Sequence record: MZ443771.1
Length of the DNA: 64,000 bases
Strand: one strand, 5' to 3'
A program made the translations under genes and the position numbers. Below the pieces are notes generated by a model. That model did no database searches, was not told the DNA's origin, and worked only from the letters and a program-made list of their open reading frames with translations. How positions within the stretch are numbered: the stretch's first letter is position 1; each line of letters begins with the position of its first letter. Shown piece by piece: positions 2,501-30,290 of the stretch.

Positions 2501-5321
2501 AAAGGGCCCAGCATTCACTCTGCGTCCGAAACGAATAGCTGCGTTTGATGCGCTGCTTGGTGACGACGTTCGAGTGGAAGCCGCATCCGATGAGGAAGAC
2601 TTCTTATCGGATAATAGTTCGAGTGCGATTAACTTTCTCGAAAAGGGTGAGGTCAACATTGTTGATCTCGTCGAGGGTGCGTTAGAGCAACGTACAATCG
2701 TACCACGCGACTTGAAGTTTGATGACAGTTCAATGCCCAAGGCGAAACACTTCCTTGAGTGGTGTACGAGTCCAGACTTCTTAAAGTCTGACCCCTATCT
2801 CGAACAGGCCCTTATCGGCCTTCGCTTATTCGGCGAAATTTGTGTACGCTGTAGTCCTAACTTGCAGTGGATGTACACAGAAAACCATGAGCCACAAGAA
2901 ACGACAGCCGCGATAGAGACACACTTACACCTACTTCACAACGGTGTGTGCCCTCATTGCGGCGCTCGTCGTTCTGAGATGATCAAAAACGGGGAAATGA
3001 ACTTCTACAACGAACTGGCAGTGAACGCCGGACAGCGTTGTGTGATAGCGTCAACACCTGTTCTTACATCTCGTGGTATCATGCCTATCGGTCACATGAT
3101 GATTGGTCATGACACGCCTGGGTTCCACAAGCCTCGTCGCCACTATAACGCGCACAATGGCCGTGAGATCAAGAACGTCAGTCAAGTCTATGTGTCCGAT
3201 GTTGCGCCTACGAAAGTCGTAATGCTCGCAAACGGTATGTGGATTGAAGCAACCCATGAGCATCCGCTGCGAACCGAACACGGATTCAAGAAAGCCGCCA
3301 AGCTCGTTCCCGGTGACCGTATTGAAGTACGTTTAGGTACGAACTCGTGGGGCAAGATTCAACGCCCTGTCAGTATCTACGATGCTGGTATGTCTACGCG
3401 TGAAGATGCGCTGCGCTATATCTCTGATCGTTCGTTGCCATTCGGCTCGACGATGCAGCAATATGTGTCTAACGATGACGATGCTCTGCAAATGGTTGCG
3501 TCTATCCTGCTTAACGCTGGTTATATGCCAAGCATTCTGCATGGGCCCGGCGATAAGAGCATTCTGTTTGACCTGACTCAGCCGCCTCAGTGTCGTGCTG
3601 CACACATCGAAGTTATCACTGTCAATGATGGTGAAGCTCAGGTGACGTATGACCTACAGATGGAAGGCTTGCCGCAGTTTATTGCTGGTGGTATGCTGCA
3701 CCACAACAGCGGTAAGTCAGTCGTAGTAGCAATGATCTCGACCTACCTGACGCACAGGCTGCTTATGTCTCAGTCGCCTACAGGCATCTTGAGTATCGAC
3801 AGCACAACCGTATTGCACGGTACGTTCGTCGCGCTGACTCAGAAGCAAGCGTCAGATACACTCTGGACTCCGTACTTCAACTACATCATGGGCAGTCCGT
3901 GGTTCCAAGCCTATCACAATTTGATTCGCAAGCACGAACGCAAGTTCGGCATAGAGGTGATGAAGATTCGTGATACGTTCGTACTGTACGGACACAGGAA
4001 CTTCGTTATCTACCCCGCCGGTCCAGATGGTCGTATTCTTCGTGGTCGAACCCGTGTACTAGCGGTAATAGATGAAGTGGCGTACTTCGACAACGACGCC
4101 GCATCGAAGAAGATCAAAGTGAGTGCTGGTGCAGTATACGGTGCACTTGACCGTAGCCTCGCAACTGTACGAGCGAAAGAAAAGCGCCAGGTCGAAGCTG
4201 GCTATGATGAAGCGTTTACAGGTTACTTCTGCAACATTAGTAGCCCTGTACATGCGCGTGACAAGATCAACGAACTGCTTCGTATGTCTGTAGGCTCGAA
4301 GACGCTGCTTGGGATTCATGCTCCTACATGGAAGATGAACCCAGACATGCCGCGTAACTCTGAGTTCCTGCTTGAAGCGTTTCGTCGTGACCCTGTTGGT
4401 GCAGCCCGTGACTACGGAGCCGAAGCACCGTTGTCTGCTAACCCATTCATCACGCAGCCTACGTTTATCGCAGATGCTATTCGTGAGAAGGGTCGTTCGA
4501 TGTGTACCTACACGCATCACATCATTCGACACAAAGACGGGGAACGCCAGCGTTATGGCAGTCTCGTTAAAGCGGCAACGACAACCAAAGCGTCGATACT
4601 CGCAATTGATGCAGGCTTCTCGAACAACAGCTTTGCACTCGTAACAGGCTCACGCGGTGATGACGGCATTATCAGTGTCGATTGTCTCGTTGAGATCGTA
4701 CCGAAGCCGGGTATCCCTTTGAACTATACCCTCATCTTTGATGAACTGCTTATCCCGCTGTGTAAGGCACGTAACGTTCGCGTGATGCTTGCCGACCAGT
4801 GGCAGTCGCTCAAGCTGCTGCAAGATGCGAAACTGAAAGTGGATTCAATTGAGGAGTCTGACCAGTACAGCCTGAAATATCAGGACATGTGGACTGTTAA
4901 GACAATGTTCGAATCTACCCCTTCGAAGATCAGCTTGCCCCGCATGACCCACGCAGCGACAATTGCTGACACGTTGAAGTATGACGGTGATGAATATCCT
5001 CAGTGCTTTGAGAACAAACCAACAGAGCACTTGATAATGCAGCTCCAGACAGTGCAGGACACTGGGCGAAGCGTTATCAAGAACACAGGGGCAACCGATG
5101 ACCTGTGGCGAGCAATGGCACTCATGGTCTATGGCTTCGAGTGTGGTGAGTACGATGAGTATCTGACTAAAGCGGCAGAAGTAACGATGAATCGTGACCC
5201 GAATCGTCTTGGCCGTGTAGCGCATCGTCTGAACAAAGGCGTGGCGGGTTCTCTCAGCACATCGCTTACTGGTGGTCGCGTTCTTGGTAGTGCGCGTACT
5301 CGAATGATTGGCCGTAAATAA
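2487..5321 (+). CDS. terL: terminase large subunit, intein-containing
   Basis: After intein removal Walker A reads NAGQRSGKS. Walker B VIDEVAYF, coupling motif NISSP, RNase H nuclease ILAIDAG and TDDLWRA. N-terminal CxxC pairs (CVRC, CPHC). Confidence 0.9.
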   Translation: MAKPKKGPAFTLRPKRIAAFDALLGDDVRVEAASDEEDFLSDNSSSAINFLEKGEVNIVDLVEGALEQRTIVPRDLKFDDSSMPKAKHFLEWCTSPDFLKSDPYLEQALIGLRLFGEICVRCSPNLQWMYTENHEPQETTAAIETHLHLLHNGVCPHCGARRSEMIKNGEMNFYNELAVNAGQRCVIASTPVLTSRGIMPIGHMMIGHDTPGFHKPRRHYNAHNGREIKNVSQVYVSDVAPTKVVMLANGMWIEATHEHPLRTEHGFKKAAKLVPGDRIEVRLGTNSWGKIQRPVSIYDAGMSTREDALRYISDRSLPFGSTMQQYVSNDDDALQMVASILLNAGYMPSILHGPGDKSILFDLTQPPQCRAAHIEVITVNDGEAQVTYDLQMEGLPQFIAGGMLHHNSGKSVVVAMISTYLTHRLLMSQSPTGILSIDSTTVLHGTFVALTQKQASDTLWTPYFNYIMGSPWFQAYHNLIRKHERKFGIEVMKIRDTFVLYGHRNFVIYPAGPDGRILRGRTRVLAVIDEVAYFDNDAASKKIKVSAGAVYGALDRSLATVRAKEKRQVEAGYDEAFTGYFCNISSPVHARDKINELLRMSVGSKTLLGIHAPTWKMNPDMPRNSEFLLEAFRRDPVGAARDYGAEAPLSANPFITQPTFIADAIREKGRSMCTYTHHIIRHKDGERQRYGSLVKAATTTKASILAIDAGFSNNSFALVTGSRGDDGIISVDCLVEIVPKPGIPLNYTLIFDELLIPLCKARNVRVMLADQWQSLKLLQDAKLKVDSIEESDQYSLKYQDMWTVKTMFESTPSKISLPRMTHAATIADTLKYDGDEYPQCFENKPTEHLIMQLQTVQDTGRSVIKNTGATDDLWRAMALMVYGFECGEYDEYLTKAAEVTMNRDPNRLGRVAHRLNKGVAGSLSTSLTGGRVLGSARTRMIGRK
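3039..3707 (+). mobile_element. intein (223 aa, mini/degenerate) in the TerL Walker A motif
   Basis: Starts CVIASTPVLTSRG (block A), has block B EATHEHPL, block F VTYDLQM and ends HHN followed by Ser+1. Only a remnant of the endonuclease is visible (MVASILLNAGY). Confidence 0.9.
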
Positions 5322-7877: not shown

Positions 7878-8260
7878 GTGGATTGTTCCCGCATCGCGTA
7901 ATTACCCAGAAAGAAGGCTTCGTGTTCATCGTTCAGCCCGCTGACGAAACGGATGCAGATGCCGTAGTTGCCGCAGAGCAAGTCGAAGAAGTTCTGGCCG
8001 AAGCGTGGCCGACTGCACCTTCTGAGCTGACTGTCGATGACGTCACTGACCCAGAAGAAGCAGAGCTGATCTTTGCTGACGTTGTGCAACTGCTGGAAGA
8101 AGCGGACCGCGAAGAAGCGAACCAGATCGTTATCACCAGCATCGTTATTGTTGGCGGTCTGGCCATCGTTAACTGTATGCTCACCGGCGAAGATATCGGT
8201 GACGACGAAGAAGACGAAGACGATGATTCCGTTGAAGCCGACGAAGAAGAGTTCGATTAA
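7874..8260 (+). CDS. highly acidic hypothetical protein
   Basis: GTG start after aggagag; D/E-rich with an acidic C-terminal tail. Confidence 0.75.
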   Translation: MSGLFPHRVITQKEGFVFIVQPADETDADAVVAAEQVEEVLAEAWPTAPSELTVDDVTDPEEAELIFADVVQLLEEADREEANQIVITSIVIVGGLAIVNCMLTGEDIGDDEEDEDDDSVEADEEEFD

Positions 8261-24235: not shown

Positions 24236-24417
24236 CTGACCGCATCGACGCGCTAAAGCTGTCTGTTTCGCACACCAAGAAATCTGTAAAGATAACTAAC
24301 AAACATGCTGAAAAGCCAGTTGAAGGAAAAGGCCGTAATGTGCGCCTTGCTTATCTCGACTGGTTGCTCAGTGTTGAAAAGCAGAAAGCTGAGGAGAGAA
24401 AGTGCGCTGCAACTTAA
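24226..24417 (+). CDS. small hypothetical protein
   Basis: Overlaps both neighbours; contains a motif A variant at 24281-24292. Confidence 0.55.
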   Translation: MGIADRIDALKLSVSHTKKSVKITNKHAEKPVEGKGRNVRLAYLDWLLSVEKQKAEERKCAAT

Positions 24418-24923
24418 CTGAACTACCAATCAAGCTCGAACAGGCCGAGTTTATTATGGCAAGCGTCTTTGCGCTCGCTGGTGCTTCTAAATCGAAACGC
24501 CGTGCGACTGCTGCGATGCTGGTGCACTTTCACAAAGGCTTCCCCACTATTATCAGTAGTGGCGTGAACGGTACGATGCCTGGTGAGAGCAACGTCATGG
24601 AGAACGCTGACCTGACGCTCTCGCTTGACACTGTTATTCACGCAGAAGCGAACTGCCTGAATCGCATGGAAGAGTACAACATGTGGTCGGACGATCAGGA
24701 CATTTTGTTCTGCACCGATTCGCCGTGTCCAAACTGTCTGGCGTATCTTGAAGCGGAAGGCGTTAAGACGATTGTGTACGCGCGAGAGTATCGCCTGACC
24801 GATCATCTGGATGCGTCTGATATCAAGATGTTCTGTCTCGATATGGATAGCGTTATTCAGCGTATGCAACACAGCATCGACCGCAGCAAAGAAGTGATTG
24901 CAACAACCCCAGCGTCTAATTAA
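24402..24923 (+). CDS. dCMP deaminase (cytidine/deoxycytidylate deaminase family)
   Basis: SGVNG, HAEAN and PCPNC zinc motifs. Confidence 0.88.
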   Translation: MRCNLTELPIKLEQAEFIMASVFALAGASKSKRRATAAMLVHFHKGFPTIISSGVNGTMPGESNVMENADLTLSLDTVIHAEANCLNRMEEYNMWSDDQDILFCTDSPCPNCLAYLEAEGVKTIVYAREYRLTDHLDASDIKMFCLDMDSVIQRMQHSIDRSKEVIATTPASN

Positions 24924-25762: not shown

Positions 25763-26251
25763 ATGTCTGATTTTAATAAGTTCAAAGATGGTTTCCTTCG
25801 CTCGGTGGGTATCGACCCAAAGCGTCTTGACCTGCCGGAAGATCCTGAGGGTGCTGAAATCTTTAACAGCCTGAATGCGCAAGACCAGCGCAAAGTCAAA
25901 GTTGGTCTTGCGCTGCTGCATCTGAAAGTTCCTGATGAAGTTCGTTATGAGTTGCTGACGAACCATCTCGATGAAACCGAGCGTCTGGTATCTACCGCGT
26001 TTGAAGATCTGACTGCCTCGCTTGTGAACAAGCTGTCGCAAGCGGGTGATGCGGAAACCAAATCGACACTCGGTAGTGTTCGTCTGGCTATGCTGATGAA
26101 CATTCTGGGTTTTGATGACGCTACTCTCACTGGCGTCCTTACCGATCCAATTCTCGCTCGTCGCGCCAGCCTTGTTGCTGTGACGTGCATGAATGAGATG
26201 GGTCAGAAAATCCAACAAATGTACGACGAGAAAAGCAATGAGCCAACCTGA
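25763..26251 (+). CDS. hypothetical protein
   Basis: ATG 25763 after gagg. Confidence 0.7.
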   Translation: MSDFNKFKDGFLRSVGIDPKRLDLPEDPEGAEIFNSLNAQDQRKVKVGLALLHLKVPDEVRYELLTNHLDETERLVSTAFEDLTASLVNKLSQAGDAETKSTLGSVRLAMLMNILGFDDATLTGVLTDPILARRASLVAVTCMNEMGQKIQQMYDEKSNEPT

Positions 26252-26396
26252 AAATCCTTTAGCGAAATTCTTCGATGAATCTGCATCTATCCCGGGTCTG
26301 GACGAAGCCCAAGAGCGCGTTGAAACAATGCGTGATGGTGGCGGTGAAGTTGTAGAAGCATCTGATGAATGCGAAGGTGGCGGCTGCAAGATCTAA
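26238..26396 (+). CDS. 52-aa protein ending in an NrdA-like redox tail (DECEGGGCKI)
   Basis: The C-terminal decapeptide matches the E. coli NrdA C-terminus DGCESGACKI at 7/10 positions. Followed by a terminator. Confidence 0.65.
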   Translation: MSQPENPLAKFFDESASIPGLDEAQERVETMRDGGGEVVEASDECEGGGCKI

Positions 26397-26399
26397 CTC

Positions 26400-26422
26400 A
26401 TGGGGCCTAGTGCCCCATTTTT
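26400..26422 (+). terminator. Rho-independent terminator
   Basis: ATGGGGC-CTAGT-GCCCCAT followed by a T-run. Confidence 0.8.
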
Positions 26423-26434
26423 GTTTTGGGGAAC

Positions 26435-26967: not shown

Positions 26968-27564
26968 ATGACAACGCGAGCGAAAAACATGCTGGACGAA
27001 ATACGCATGAAACTTAGTAAGTGCCGACATGAGTACCGCAGACAAGAAGCTGCTGATCGTGTGCTCAAGCACGATGCAATACGCGGCGGTCAGGTGTGGA
27101 CAAACATCAAAAACAATGCGCCATACCAAGTGTTGTTCCTGACTAACCTGTACAACGACGGTCACATTCAGGTTGTGTATTCTCAGCATTGGGCATACAT
27201 CTACTCCATGCCTGTTGAAGACTTCTTCGAACAGTTCACACAAAATCTGAACATCGACAACACCTTGGCCAGTGCGCACGATGACCTGATGGCTATGGCG
27301 ACCAACATGCGTGGGAGCACTCGCTTACGCTTACCGCAAGAAGGTGAACGCTGGACGCGTGTTGACCGCATACCAGACGGCTTCGATGAAAATCGTATGC
27401 CTGTATACCGCCCGCAGTCTGTTACCGTTGTGGTTGAAGGCATCGTCGAGCAAAGTCCTGCGCATCCATTCGTTCTGTTTAAAGAAGGCGGCGAGCGCAA
27501 GGTCCTGAACATGTATATGTTCCTAAACTTCTACAGCCCTGAAGGTGAAAACAATGTTGCTTGA
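26968..27564 (+). CDS. protein with two DUF1653-like beta-barrel domains
   Basis: GQVWTN...YQVLFL...VVYS...SMPVEDF, plus LPQEGERW...HPFVLF. Confidence 0.6.
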   Translation: MTTRAKNMLDEIRMKLSKCRHEYRRQEAADRVLKHDAIRGGQVWTNIKNNAPYQVLFLTNLYNDGHIQVVYSQHWAYIYSMPVEDFFEQFTQNLNIDNTLASAHDDLMAMATNMRGSTRLRLPQEGERWTRVDRIPDGFDENRMPVYRPQSVTVVVEGIVEQSPAHPFVLFKEGGERKVLNMYMFLNFYSPEGENNVA

Positions 27565-28189
27565 TGCGCTAAAGGCACTGCCGTTGCTTGTACTGTGTTA
27601 TATCGCGTGGAACTGGTTGATTGCTCGTCGTGACCGTGACCGTCAACTTATCAAAGCGCAAGAGCATTATGATCGCGGTCACCTTGATCGCGGTAACGTC
27701 TGGATTCATTTAAAGACAGGTCGTCCGTATACCGTTCTCGGTCTGACTAATACTGGCACGTCGAAAGCTGGCTGGGAAATCAACGTCATCTATACGAATG
27801 ACTTCAAGCAGATCTATAACAGGCCGTTCAGTGAGTTCTGCCATAAGTTCACGCACGTTAGTCGCGGTTCTAATGAAGAACACTTCACTTTGACGCTGAT
27901 GGGTTTGCAGATGGAAGCTAACACTCGTCTTCTTATTCCACAAGAAGGTGAGATTTGGTTTGAGGGCACCATACACGCGACACCTCCAGAGCTGGTGGAA
28001 CGTGGCCACGCACCGCAAGTAGTCAGTCAACGCCGTGCGCATATCGACATGGTGCTTGGTGTAGGTGAAGCCCACCCAGTAGTCGTGTATACTGTAAATG
28101 ACAAGCAGACAGCAATGCTGCTCTCGCAGTTCATTTTCATCTATCGCAAAGAGGTGTCCTTCGATGGAACAACCAGCTCTTGTGTTTAA
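27554..28189 (+). CDS. paralog of the previous gene with an N-terminal TM anchor
   Basis: LPLLVLCYIAWNWLI; GNVWIH...YTVLGL...VIYT...NRPFSEF; IPQEGEIW...HPVVVY. Confidence 0.65.
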   Translation: MLLDALKALPLLVLCYIAWNWLIARRDRDRQLIKAQEHYDRGHLDRGNVWIHLKTGRPYTVLGLTNTGTSKAGWEINVIYTNDFKQIYNRPFSEFCHKFTHVSRGSNEEHFTLTLMGLQMEANTRLLIPQEGEIWFEGTIHATPPELVERGHAPQVVSQRRAHIDMVLGVGEAHPVVVYTVNDKQTAMLLSQFIFIYRKEVSFDGTTSSCV

Positions 28190-28849: not shown

Positions 28850-29187
28850 CTACACCAGTAATTCGCTTTGACGAACAGACACGTCAACTGCTGGCAAAGA
28901 TCTTCGGCATACATAAGCCGTTCTTTGTTGTGCGTCGTGATACGATCATCTCAGGTGGTGACTTGGGCTTTCGTGTGTATCTGTCGAATGGCACCAACAC
29001 TGTTACCGTTCCTCGCGTTAAAGGCCTTGACTTGGGCGACAAGCTCTATCTTGGTGATGACGAGGAAGTTTATGAGTGGCATCCTCATATAGGCTGCACG
29101 TATATGGCCATTGGCGATAATCAGCCAGAAGCACTCGCATTTGGTCTTCATCCAATCGTTTTTCACAAAGACAGTCGGAACTCTTAA
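28846..29187 (+). CDS. hypothetical protein
   Basis: ATGA overlap with the previous gene. Confidence 0.65.
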   Translation: MTTPVIRFDEQTRQLLAKIFGIHKPFFVVRRDTIISGGDLGFRVYLSNGTNTVTVPRVKGLDLGDKLYLGDDEEVYEWHPHIGCTYMAIGDNQPEALAFGLHPIVFHKDSRNS

Positions 29188-30290
29188 TGGCAAAGCAAAC
29201 TCTTGATCTACGCGATCCTAATCAGTACGAACTCTATTCCCTGCATTGTGTTGACGAGCAATACATCAATCTGGGCAACGCTATCATCTCTCAGGGTACT
29301 GATGAGTCAGACCCAGGCCGTACAGAAGATACGTGGCGCACCATTATCGGCTGTGGCTTCCAGTTGTCAAACACGCTGATCGCTTTCCCTGCGTTAGTCA
29401 GTGCTCGTAAGAACTGGCTGGCAGCAGTCGATGAGATGTGCTGGATGTCTCGCGGCGAAACGAATATCAGCTCGCTCAATTCCAAAATCTGGAATGAGTG
29501 GGCAGATGAAGACGGCGAGTGCGGCCCTATCTACGGTCTGATGTGGCGCATGTGGCCTGATATCAAAACGTTCCCGACTATTGAGTCGATGAAAGAGCGT
29601 CAGATCAGCGATGCAGAAATCGAGCGCATCTCGAAAGAGATCAATCGCATGAAAGCTGCCGGGTACACTGAAACGCAAATGGCTGACGGTCGTGTGTGCT
29701 ACGAAGGTACAGTTGACCAGTTCGCTGATGCGCTGCGTCAGGTAATGGCCCGCAGTCGTTCTCGTCGTATTCGCGTTCAGGCGTACAACCCGTCCTATCT
29801 GCACATGCAGGGTCTGCCTCCGTGCCACACCGAGTTCGAGTTCAACGTAACCAAGCCGACGCTGTATGAAATCGCTCAGATGGAAGCGCGTCAAATGGCA
29901 CCGGCCGAAGATTCGTTGCACATCGTTGTGACCATGAGATCGAACGATGTGCTCTTGGGCAGGCCATTTAACATCATCGGCTACAGCGCCATGCACCAGA
30001 TGATTGCCAAGTGGGCTGGCTTGAACGTCGGTAGCTTTACGCTCAACACTACCAACACGCACCTGTACACGCATCACTTTGAAGCGTTTGAAAAGCAGCG
30101 TGAGCAGTGGGCAGTTCTCGCAGACAACATGAAGCGCACTGGCGAACCTGTTGTCTATCCTATGCTGGAAATCAGCGACGACATTCTCGGTCTGACGCCG
30201 GAAGAGTTGCTGGACAACGCGAACGCAGAGTGGTTCCAGCTTCTCGATTACGCACCATCACCAGCGGTCAAAGGACGTGTGACGAAATGA
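29187..30290 (+). CDS. thyA: thymidylate synthase (ThyA type)
   Basis: EMCWMSRG, IWNEWA, GPIYG..WR, SRRI, LPPCH, RSND..LGRPFN (Asn, dUMP-specific) and HLY. Confidence 0.93.
   Translation: MAKQTLDLRDPNQYELYSLHCVDEQYINLGNAIISQGTDESDPGRTEDTWRTIIGCGFQLSNTLIAFPALVSARKNWLAAVDEMCWMSRGETNISSLNSKIWNEWADEDGECGPIYGLMWRMWPDIKTFPTIESMKERQISDAEIERISKEINRMKAAGYTETQMADGRVCYEGTVDQFADALRQVMARSRSRRIRVQAYNPSYLHMQGLPPCHTEFEFNVTKPTLYEIAQMEARQMAPAEDSLHIVVTMRSNDVLLGRPFNIIGYSAMHQMIAKWAGLNVGSFTLNTTNTHLYTHHFEAFEKQREQWAVLADNMKRTGEPVVYPMLEISDDILGLTPEELLDNANAEWFQLLDYAPSPAVKGRVTK

Follow-up and report, generated by a model that had tools for sequence, protein, structure and literature searches.

A phage micro-protein family ending in an NrdA-type redox tail: a candidate docked surrogate tail for host ribonucleotide reductase

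Introduction

Ribonucleotide reductase (RNR) is the sole de novo source of DNA precursors, and the regeneration step of its cycle is thought to limit turnover. To our knowledge, the factors that act on RNR regeneration are of three kinds, namely thioredoxins and glutaredoxins, Sml1-type inhibitors, and peptides of the small-subunit tail. We describe here the gene of a 52-residue protein, P0001, which lies in a window of 64,000 nucleotides (the whole stretch of DNA that was analysed) from the Erwinia amylovora jumbo phage pEa_SNUABM_20 (MZ443771, 100% identity; genome 265.9 kb; genus Alexandravirus) and whose C-terminus resembles the redox tail of the RNR large subunit, NrdA.

In the large subunit (alpha), the last ~24 residues, with C754 and C759, are disordered in crystals, and residues 360-375 of the small subunit (beta, NrdB) bind to alpha (PMC4728125). 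According to two further papers, the C-terminal cysteine pair regenerates the RNR active site and is itself reduced by thioredoxin (Trx) or glutaredoxin (Grx) (PMC4078304, PMC5704485). A literature search yielded no paper with the motif CESGACKI and none describing a phage mimic of the RNR tail, nor does the searchable literature describe a mobile gene for a detached version of the tail of the large subunit.

Similarity of P0001 to the C-terminal tail of NrdA

The P0001 gene (26238-26396, + strand; 52 codons plus stop) translates to MSQPENPLAKFFDESASIPGLDEAQERVETMRDGGGEVVEASDECEGGGCKI, is a coding sequence in related phage records, where the product is annotated as a "hypothetical protein", and has more than 60 homologs. 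A first-pass annotation, made from the DNA letters, had described at this position an acidic, likely disordered open reading frame (ORF) of 52 residues that ends in DECEGGGCKI and is followed by a terminator. The translation and the hairpin with its T run downstream confirm this description, the composition is very acidic (isoelectric point (pI) 4.05, net charge about -9.5, 13 D/E versus 4 K/R), and the disorder is borne out by models of two fused homologs (see below), in both of which the segment equivalent to the cysteine tail has a predicted local distance difference test score (pLDDT) of less than 50. An ending of the form C.{2,4}C.[IL] was present in one of the 1127 open frames of at least 30 residues in the window. 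The protein can be divided into a variable acidic N-terminal part (residues 1-16, MSQPENPLAKFFDESA; 26238-26285, + strand), which is poorly conserved across the family; a conserved central segment (residues 17-35, SIPGLDEAQERVETMRDGG; 26286-26342, + strand), which is predicted to be helical and to serve as the NrdA-docking element; and an NrdA-type redox tail (residues 37-52, EVVEASDECEGGGCKI; 26346-26393, + strand), in which Cys45 is encoded by 26370-26372 and Cys50 by 26385-26387 of the same strand.

The C-terminus of Escherichia coli NrdA is ...IQDDGCESGACKI (longer stretch, ...TRDGAEDAQDDLVPSIQDDGCESGACKI), so that the ending DGCESGACKI cited in the first-pass annotation is correct, and NrdA proteins from 80 Enterobacterales genomes, Erwinia species included, end nearly unchanged in DDGCE[SG]GACKI. 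When the hidden Markov model (HMM) of the P0001 family was compared with E. coli NrdA, its last 11 positions covered residues 751-761 from end to end (p 8e-5 for NrdA as a single sequence). A profile-profile comparison of the family with the NrdA tail (hhalign) covered 26 columns, pairing D22-I52 of P0001 with NrdA 736-761 (Prob 95%, P 3e-8), with a score of 37 as against 8.4 ± 1.9 in 300 column shuffles, none of which reached 37; the likeness to NrdA extends in this way over about 26 NrdA residues, beyond the CxxxxC-K-I end that had been claimed. In addition, the homologs of Alexandra and AD1 end in DGCESGACKI, which is identical to the host NrdA end at 10 of 10 positions, and the CEGGACKI of Miami is the motif found in NrdA of Pectobacterium and Yersinia. 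A search of the six-frame translated E. coli K-12 genome with the family profile gave no match, NrdA included, the module being too short for that tool. Judged from these sequence comparisons, the tail of P0001 is homologous to, or a close mimic of, the whole flexible tail of NrdA, and a chance CxxxxC is excluded.

Members, distribution and conservation of the family

Using tblastn together with word-based and full profile searches, we found family members in Alexandravirus, Yoloswagvirus, Snuvirus, Salmondvirus (Dickeya phages JA11/13/29/33) and phage Y3; in the nucleus-forming phages PCH45, Miami and Wellington/Kwan; in Salmonella phage SA002, Erwinia phages pEa_SNUABM_37/48/54, Yersinia phage fHe-Yen9-02 and Proteus phage 10; and in one metagenomic N4-like contig. 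All of the isolated carrier phages infect Enterobacterales, whose NrdA bears the matching tail. In a study of the Chimalliviridae, Alexandra was the non-chimallin outgroup whereas PCH45, Miami and Wellington were placed within the family; the gene has therefore crossed between phage groups that are not related. It was absent from the BASEL phage Bas88, a relative of the metagenomic N4-like carrier. The N4-like (Schitoviridae-like) contig itself encodes the micro-protein together with NrdD and NrdG of a class III RNR (L107:1097-3232, 4393-4929, 8001-8141), and the family is therefore limited neither to jumbo phages nor to RNR-free phages.

A profile search of 1.84 billion representative proteins returned 26 clusters at E <1e-3, every one with the module at the extreme C-terminus, and among the 64 proteins at E up to 10 the module was C-terminal in all; the word-based search gave ~40 more small proteins. 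The family consensus consists of a variable acidic N-terminus followed by D-x-A-E-x-R-V-E-x-M-[RQ]-x-G-G-G-E-V-V-E-[AP]-S-[DN]-E-C-E-[GS]-G-[GA]-C-K-I, and P0001 carries this D-x-A-E...C-K-I module at its extreme C-terminus. All members (>60) have both cysteines and a final I/L, but the spacing of the cysteines varies: Cx4C predominates, a few members have Cx3C, and Wellington, Y3 and Yoloswag have CxxC. Because both cysteines are invariant though their spacing is not, a shuttle that turns over seems a better description than a rigid structural mimic.

The N-terminal parts differ more widely. Some members start with M-S-G-K-D-L-S-S-Y-L, and in others the P0001-type N-terminus is replaced by K-D-L-S-x-Y-L and D-D-F-D-L-x-A-L motifs or by whole folded domains. 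In Yoloswag gp34 (L008:2722-3162), an M-A-K-D-L-S-Q-Y-L motif and the C-terminal tail module are split by an insertion of ~85 residues that is partly collagen-like (GPGPCPKGEPGQP). Searches of Pfam and NCBIfam with P0001 and its relatives gave nothing meaningful, and a PDB sequence search with P0001 gave no match; in PHROG, P0001 matched weakly to phrog_24014, 14561 and 38753, and its relatives to phrog_10239, which covers part of this otherwise unnamed family.

Members are of three kinds: free proteins of 41-85 residues, C-terminal modules on two unrelated N-terminal domains of larger proteins, and a 42-residue gene product encoded between iscS and iscU. For example, domain (a), of ~105 residues, is fused to the module in SA002 (L004:3608-4099) and its relatives, and in pEa_SNUABM_37 it is a separate gene (L007:2638-2961) directly upstream of a free micro-protein (L007:3001-3186), the two phages forming a fusion/fission pair. 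For the two fused domains there was no Pfam family, no conserved cysteine and no Foldseek match to a PDB fold (model pLDDT 62 and 70), an Atlas search gave no usable match for them, and domain (b) is absent from the phage of our window. In the models of the fused homologs the central segment is helical. Domain (a) is of unknown fold class, with the order beta-beta-alpha-alpha-beta-beta and a pLDDT of about 90.

Sequence comparisons between close relatives showed that P0001 is a real gene under purifying selection. In pEa_SNUABM_33, in which the flanking DNA is 77-87% identical, the protein is 100% identical to P0001, and the genes differ by six synonymous changes, all at third positions, and by no non-synonymous change; the ratio of non-synonymous to synonymous substitution rates (dN/dS) against Y3 and the Alexandra group is 0.14-0.2. 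Short contigs from three wastewater metatranscriptome runs span the ORF, which is only a hint of expression, as DNA carry-over is possible and contigs give neither strand nor level. Variant alleles of the P0001 gene were seen among these RNA-library contigs (runs X11 and X16, with loose ends at window 26379; run X17, at window 26249-26373). In one allele ...DDKDADGCES is joined to GGCKI, and in another the middle 123 nucleotides are replaced with both ends retained; close relatives therefore circulate in sewage.

RNR and nucleotide-metabolism genes in the carrier phages

We found no nrdA in the window, in agreement with the first-pass annotation, and no RNR large subunit (PF02867) in any of ten carrier phage genomes, including the nearest complete genome (G001, which shares 92% of its words with the window). 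Five carrier genomes, G001 among them, were also searched for NrdD (class III RNR), Trx and Grx, and none was present. These results bear on the idea that P0001 is the detached tail of a split phage RNR, or the decaying remnant of a lost phage nrdA. A class II precedent is described in PMC5704485, in which the Cys-rich C-terminal domain is encoded apart from the rest of the enzyme (NrdJa plus NrdJb), but the PF02867 and NrdD results leave the tail with no enzyme to belong to, and a remnant would hardly have its own start, conservation across unrelated phage groups and purifying selection. We therefore consider this origin extremely improbable, and a split RNR, which the first-pass annotation had listed, is ruled out for the phage of P0001 and the ten carrier genomes.

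Among the carrier genomes searched, NrdB was found in PCH45 only (MN334766, about 124783-125889; L012:1284-2390). It is a host-like protein of 368 residues with an intact tail, ...SSYLVGQIDADVNTEDFGDFQL, and PCH45 apparently contributes only this small subunit, which bears the radical, as a partner for the NrdA of the host. PCH45 also leaves the host chromosome undegraded (preprint 10.1101/2023.02.24.529968) and therefore probably depends on new synthesis of deoxynucleoside triphosphates (dNTPs) by the host large subunit. Genes for dCMP deaminase and thymidylate synthase (ThyA) are found no more than a few kb from the micro-gene in Alexandravirus, Yoloswag and JA13, and in Wellington the micro-gene is flanked by ThyA on one side and by a gene with a MazG-like annotation on the other; a nucleotide-metabolism neighbourhood thus recurs in at least four genera.

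A homolog in a bacterial isc operon

A search of 301 genomes of one bacterial order with the DNA pattern CE.G[AG]CKI-stop revealed, beyond the NrdA tail of the centre genome, matches in three further genomes, which we take to be those of Neisseria-type bacteria. All three matches are a 42-residue acidic ORF, MNEQDLDLDNLDNLLEDFDGVTVEGGVDSENDDGCEGGACKI, ending in DDGCEGGACKI (L111 4008-4136, - strand; L112 3940-4068, + strand; L113 3906-4034, + strand), and in all three genomes it sits between iscS and iscU, as X in the operon iscR-iscS-X-iscU-iscA-hscB. The phage family HMM aligned with this ORF over its full length (p 5e-6 to 3e-5). In one of the genomes, nrdA begins 360 nucleotides past hscB and its product retains its own tail, DDGCAGGACKI; the free tail therefore comes in addition to that of NrdA and does not replace it, and its role may be wider than RNR. 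A literature search gave nothing on a small gene between iscS and iscU in Neisseria.

The location in an iron-sulfur (Fe-S) assembly operon, together with the short, acidic, two-cysteine nature of the protein, could be taken to indicate an unrelated cysteine peptide, acting as a metal or Fe-S ligand or as the precursor of a modified peptide, in which the likeness to NrdA is convergent. We consider this improbable. The 10/10 identity with host NrdA and the profile similarity over 26 residues far exceed a shared CxxxxC, the variable spacing of the cysteines argues against a fixed metal site, and no modifying enzyme is conserved beside the gene.

Predicted docking on NrdA and possible modes of action

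P0001 was modelled in complex with residues 1-740 of E. coli NrdA, from which NrdA's own tail had been removed, in three runs and with three controls. The scores for the pair were 0.66, 0.65 and 0.66, and the best of the three controls scored 0.00; in the calibration of the score, 51 of 78 solved complexes and 2 of 108 mismatched pairs attained this mark. The pLDDT of the partner was 53-55, and at least 67% of the contacts were common to the runs. The confident interface of the model comprises residues 17-21, 24-25, 27-28 and 31-35 of P0001, in the conserved helix, and residues 314-328, 347-350, 394-405 and 711-715 of NrdA. By approximate offsets from conserved catalytic residues, we take the site at which yeast R1 binds the R2 C-terminal peptide to correspond to about residues 349-354, 397-404 and 710-719 in E. 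coli, and the central helix of P0001 is apparently placed by the models in the small-subunit (beta-tail) cleft of NrdA. In yeast R1 this site is made up of V342, E343, Q386, W389, L393, M721, G722, T725 and F729, and the R2 peptide of E. coli is helical when bound (PMC3483043).

We propose that P0001 may be a small, mostly disordered and very acidic protein in which an amphipathic helix (residues ~17-33) is connected by a GGG hinge to a 16-residue dithiol tail. The helix would dock on host NrdA, at or next to the cleft into which the C-terminal tail of NrdB normally fits, and docking would bring the dithiol tail to the entrance of the active site; the tail would then reduce the C225-C462 disulfide left by each turnover, as NrdA's own C754/C759 do, and would be recharged by host thioredoxin or glutaredoxin. 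As the phage itself encodes neither RNR nor thioredoxin nor glutaredoxin, we regard such a protein as a cheap means of acting on the dNTP-supplying enzyme of the host, most likely so as to keep host RNR turning over during infection. Upkeep of the host enzyme, rather than its arrest, is favoured because the carriers lack RNR, because PCH45 spares host DNA and must rely on host RNR, and because PCH45 adds an NrdB. A trans-acting shuttle had been suggested from the first for either host or phage RNR; the host version is the better supported, by the tail homology, the lack of a phage RNR and the docking model. We would put somewhat short of even the chances that P0001 acts on host RNR as a surrogate redox tail docked there; the docking is predicted by modelling, and we infer the thiol-disulfide exchange with the active site, the reduction of the tail by Trx/Grx and the direction of the effect, be it boost or block.

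Several observations weigh against this proposal. The cysteine tail was not placed in the model of the complex; the score expresses how confident the model is in its own output, and may derive from memorized R1-R2 peptide complexes that have been solved; and the mapping to the beta cleft rests on approximate residue offsets. Mimicry of the NrdB tail in sequence, which had been suspected from the K-D-L-S-S-Y-L and D-D-F-D-L motifs, was non-significant for the N-terminal/middle part of the family by HMM (hmmsearch p 0.07-0.11), by profile-profile comparison (hhalign P 0.18) and by column shuffle (50 of 300 shuffles equalled or exceeded the observed value), so that any such mimicry would be structural only. 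A ligand of the beta cleft should compete with NrdB, which argues for inhibition and fits poorly with the NrdB of PCH45, and NrdA already has a tail of its own at high local concentration, to which a free one may add little. In a class II RNR, PMC5704485 reports that activity was not restored when the separately expressed C-terminal domain was added back. Finally, the module is fused to two unrelated domains of unknown function, and the homolog in the iscRSUA operon of bacteria, in one of which, where nrdA was read, NrdA has an intact tail, points to a more general or Fe-S-linked role.

The expected competition with NrdB makes an inhibitor, resembling Sml1 or the R2 peptides, a serious rival. 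The helix would fill the cleft of the NrdB tail, and the dithiol tail would plug the active site or rival NrdA's own; such inhibition might serve to halt host replication, to alter nucleotide pools or, for the bacterial homolog, to couple RNR to Fe-S status, and a position in an iron-sulfur stress operon would suit such a regulator. The predicted interface coincides, by approximate numbering, with the R2-peptide site, C-terminal peptides of R2 are classical competitive inhibitors of RNR (PMC3483043), and the small protein Sml1 blocks regeneration of R1 by its CX2C tail, as stated in PMC6382339 citing Zhang 2007. Blocking the sole source of dNTPs, however, looks self-defeating for carriers that have no RNR of their own, some of which spare host DNA, and PCH45 even adds its own NrdB. 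Moreover, a pure blocker would not need two invariant cysteines, and the free C-terminal carboxylate that is important in the R2 peptides is absent here since the helix is internal. On balance, we think inhibition unlikely, if well worth keeping in view.

The portability of the module suggests another possibility, in which the free tail is a high-affinity substrate of host Trx1/Grx1 and acts as a decoy that diverts them from their clients, NrdA included, or as an adaptor that recruits their reducing power to the fused domains, to IscS/IscU or to a phage enzyme, as a protein-borne dithiol comparable to dithiothreitol. The tail is identical to a natural Trx/Grx substrate; it occurs on two unrelated N-terminal domains, in a fusion/fission pair and at the iscS-iscU site, at least one such bacterium having a normal NrdA tail; and no Trx or Grx is encoded in the five phage genomes searched. 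On the other hand, the fused domains lack any conserved cysteine through which they might act as disulfide clients, a two-cysteine substrate recycles and would not trap Trx, and this explanation does not account for the conserved central helix, the predicted docking on NrdA or the link with nucleotide genes. It appears to us rather unlikely.

Returning to the surrogate tail docked on host RNR, we may ask how far it could be generalized. Unrelated phage groups and some bacteria would use a peptide of 40-60 residues, consisting of a helix that fits into the small-subunit cleft of the large subunit and a copy of the dithiol tail of the latter, as a diffusible, thioredoxin-rechargeable surrogate for the tail of class Ia RNR. 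This broader proposal is plausible but doubtful.

Local layout of the P0001 region

The gene upstream of P0001 (25763-26251, + strand) encodes 162 residues of unknown function, and its stop overlaps the start of the micro-ORF by 14 nucleotides. It has no Pfam or PHROG family, and outside Alexandravirus it is not conserved beside the micro-ORF. Upstream genes in general are not conserved there beyond this genus, and the immediate neighbours are accordingly rejected as obligate partners. Downstream, an intrinsic-terminator-like hairpin and T run occupy 26400-26428 (+ strand); the hairpin itself, at 26400-26418, lies 4 nucleotides beyond the P0001 stop and has the stem ATGGGGC/GCCCCAT and a loop of 5, followed by TTTTTGTTTT. 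The first-pass annotation placed the ORF near dCMP deaminase and ThyA, and both are confirmed by Pfam (dCMP deaminase, 24402-24923, + strand, PF00383, E 1.5e-10; ThyA homolog, 29187-30290, + strand, PF00303, E 2.3e-55), the association recurring in other genera as described above. Because no other terminator-like site was found on the + strand between the deaminase gene and 26400-26428, the P0001 gene probably ends a transcription unit whose start is at the deaminase gene or farther upstream. Two adjacent genes of ~200 codons (26968-27564 and 27554-28189), located in the stretch from the micro-ORF to ThyA, both match a single gene of Dickeya phage JA13 (L011:5150-6019), an arrangement that resembles tandem duplication of a gene of unknown function.

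Implications

If P0001 does act as a surrogate tail, it would represent a new layer of RNR control in which a virus without RNR takes over the redox cycle of the host enzyme, and jumbo phages of this kind would secure or steer the host dNTP supply through P0001-type tails. Bacteria could likewise couple RNR turnover to iron-sulfur status, the iscS-iscU homolog suggesting an unexplored link of Fe-S assembly to RNR or to thiol redox. The poorly understood tail-swing step of the RNR cycle would become directly testable in trans, and a natural bivalent peptide ligand of bacterial RNR would be available as a probe or as a scaffold for inhibitors. If P0001 is a plain Trx/Grx substrate, it would still define a new family of small proteins, of narrower interest.

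Comparison with known systems

In encoding an RNR C-terminal redox element as a gene of its own, P0001 resembles NrdJb, which in PMC5704485 is a folded, zinc-finger-like domain beside a tail-less catalytic partner; P0001, in contrast, is a short, disordered tail of class Ia type with no partner gene, and in the bacterial genome where nrdA lies past the isc operon, NrdA keeps its tail. Yeast Sml1, which may be compared along with regulators of the Spd1/Dif1 type, is small and mostly unstructured; its target is the large subunit, where it hinders the C-terminal cysteine pair in regenerating the active site (PMC6382339). The analogy with P0001 is one of function. Sml1 is an inhibitor without a copy of the tail, whereas the present family has such a copy and is viral and bacterial.

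With the C-terminal tail of NrdB (360-375) and the inhibitory peptides derived from it, P0001 shares an acidic, amphipathic character; its helix is predicted by the complex model to sit on the NrdA surface that would, by approximate numbering, be the R2-peptide site, and the K-D-L-S-S-Y-L start of some family members recalls V-S-S-Y356-L-V of NrdB. However, the docking segment of P0001 is internal, with no free C-terminal carboxylate, the tyrosine is absent from P0001, and the likeness in sequence is non-significant. GrcA (YfiD) is a free-standing spare glycyl-radical domain of pyruvate formate-lyase, which works in trans and replaces a damaged domain. In concept, it resembles P0001 as a small protein duplicating the C-terminal module of a large radical enzyme, but it belongs to another enzyme family with other chemistry, and the P0001 data give no sign of replacement.

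The closest counterpart is the tail of NrdA itself. P0001 differs from it in being a stand-alone ORF that is not joined to the RNR catalytic barrel (PF02867), in having a conserved helix and a GGG hinge before the tail, in the variable cysteine spacing within the phage family, and in being encoded by phages without a large subunit. The two are alike in their last 8-11 residues, with a profile likeness over ~26 residues, and both are acidic and disordered, with a two-cysteine motif at the extreme C-terminus. Class Ia alpha tails carry a Cx4C motif (Cx2C in eukaryotes) within about the last 10 residues of a flexible, disordered and acidic segment, and C45 and C50 of P0001 have this spacing and position in a segment of that character.

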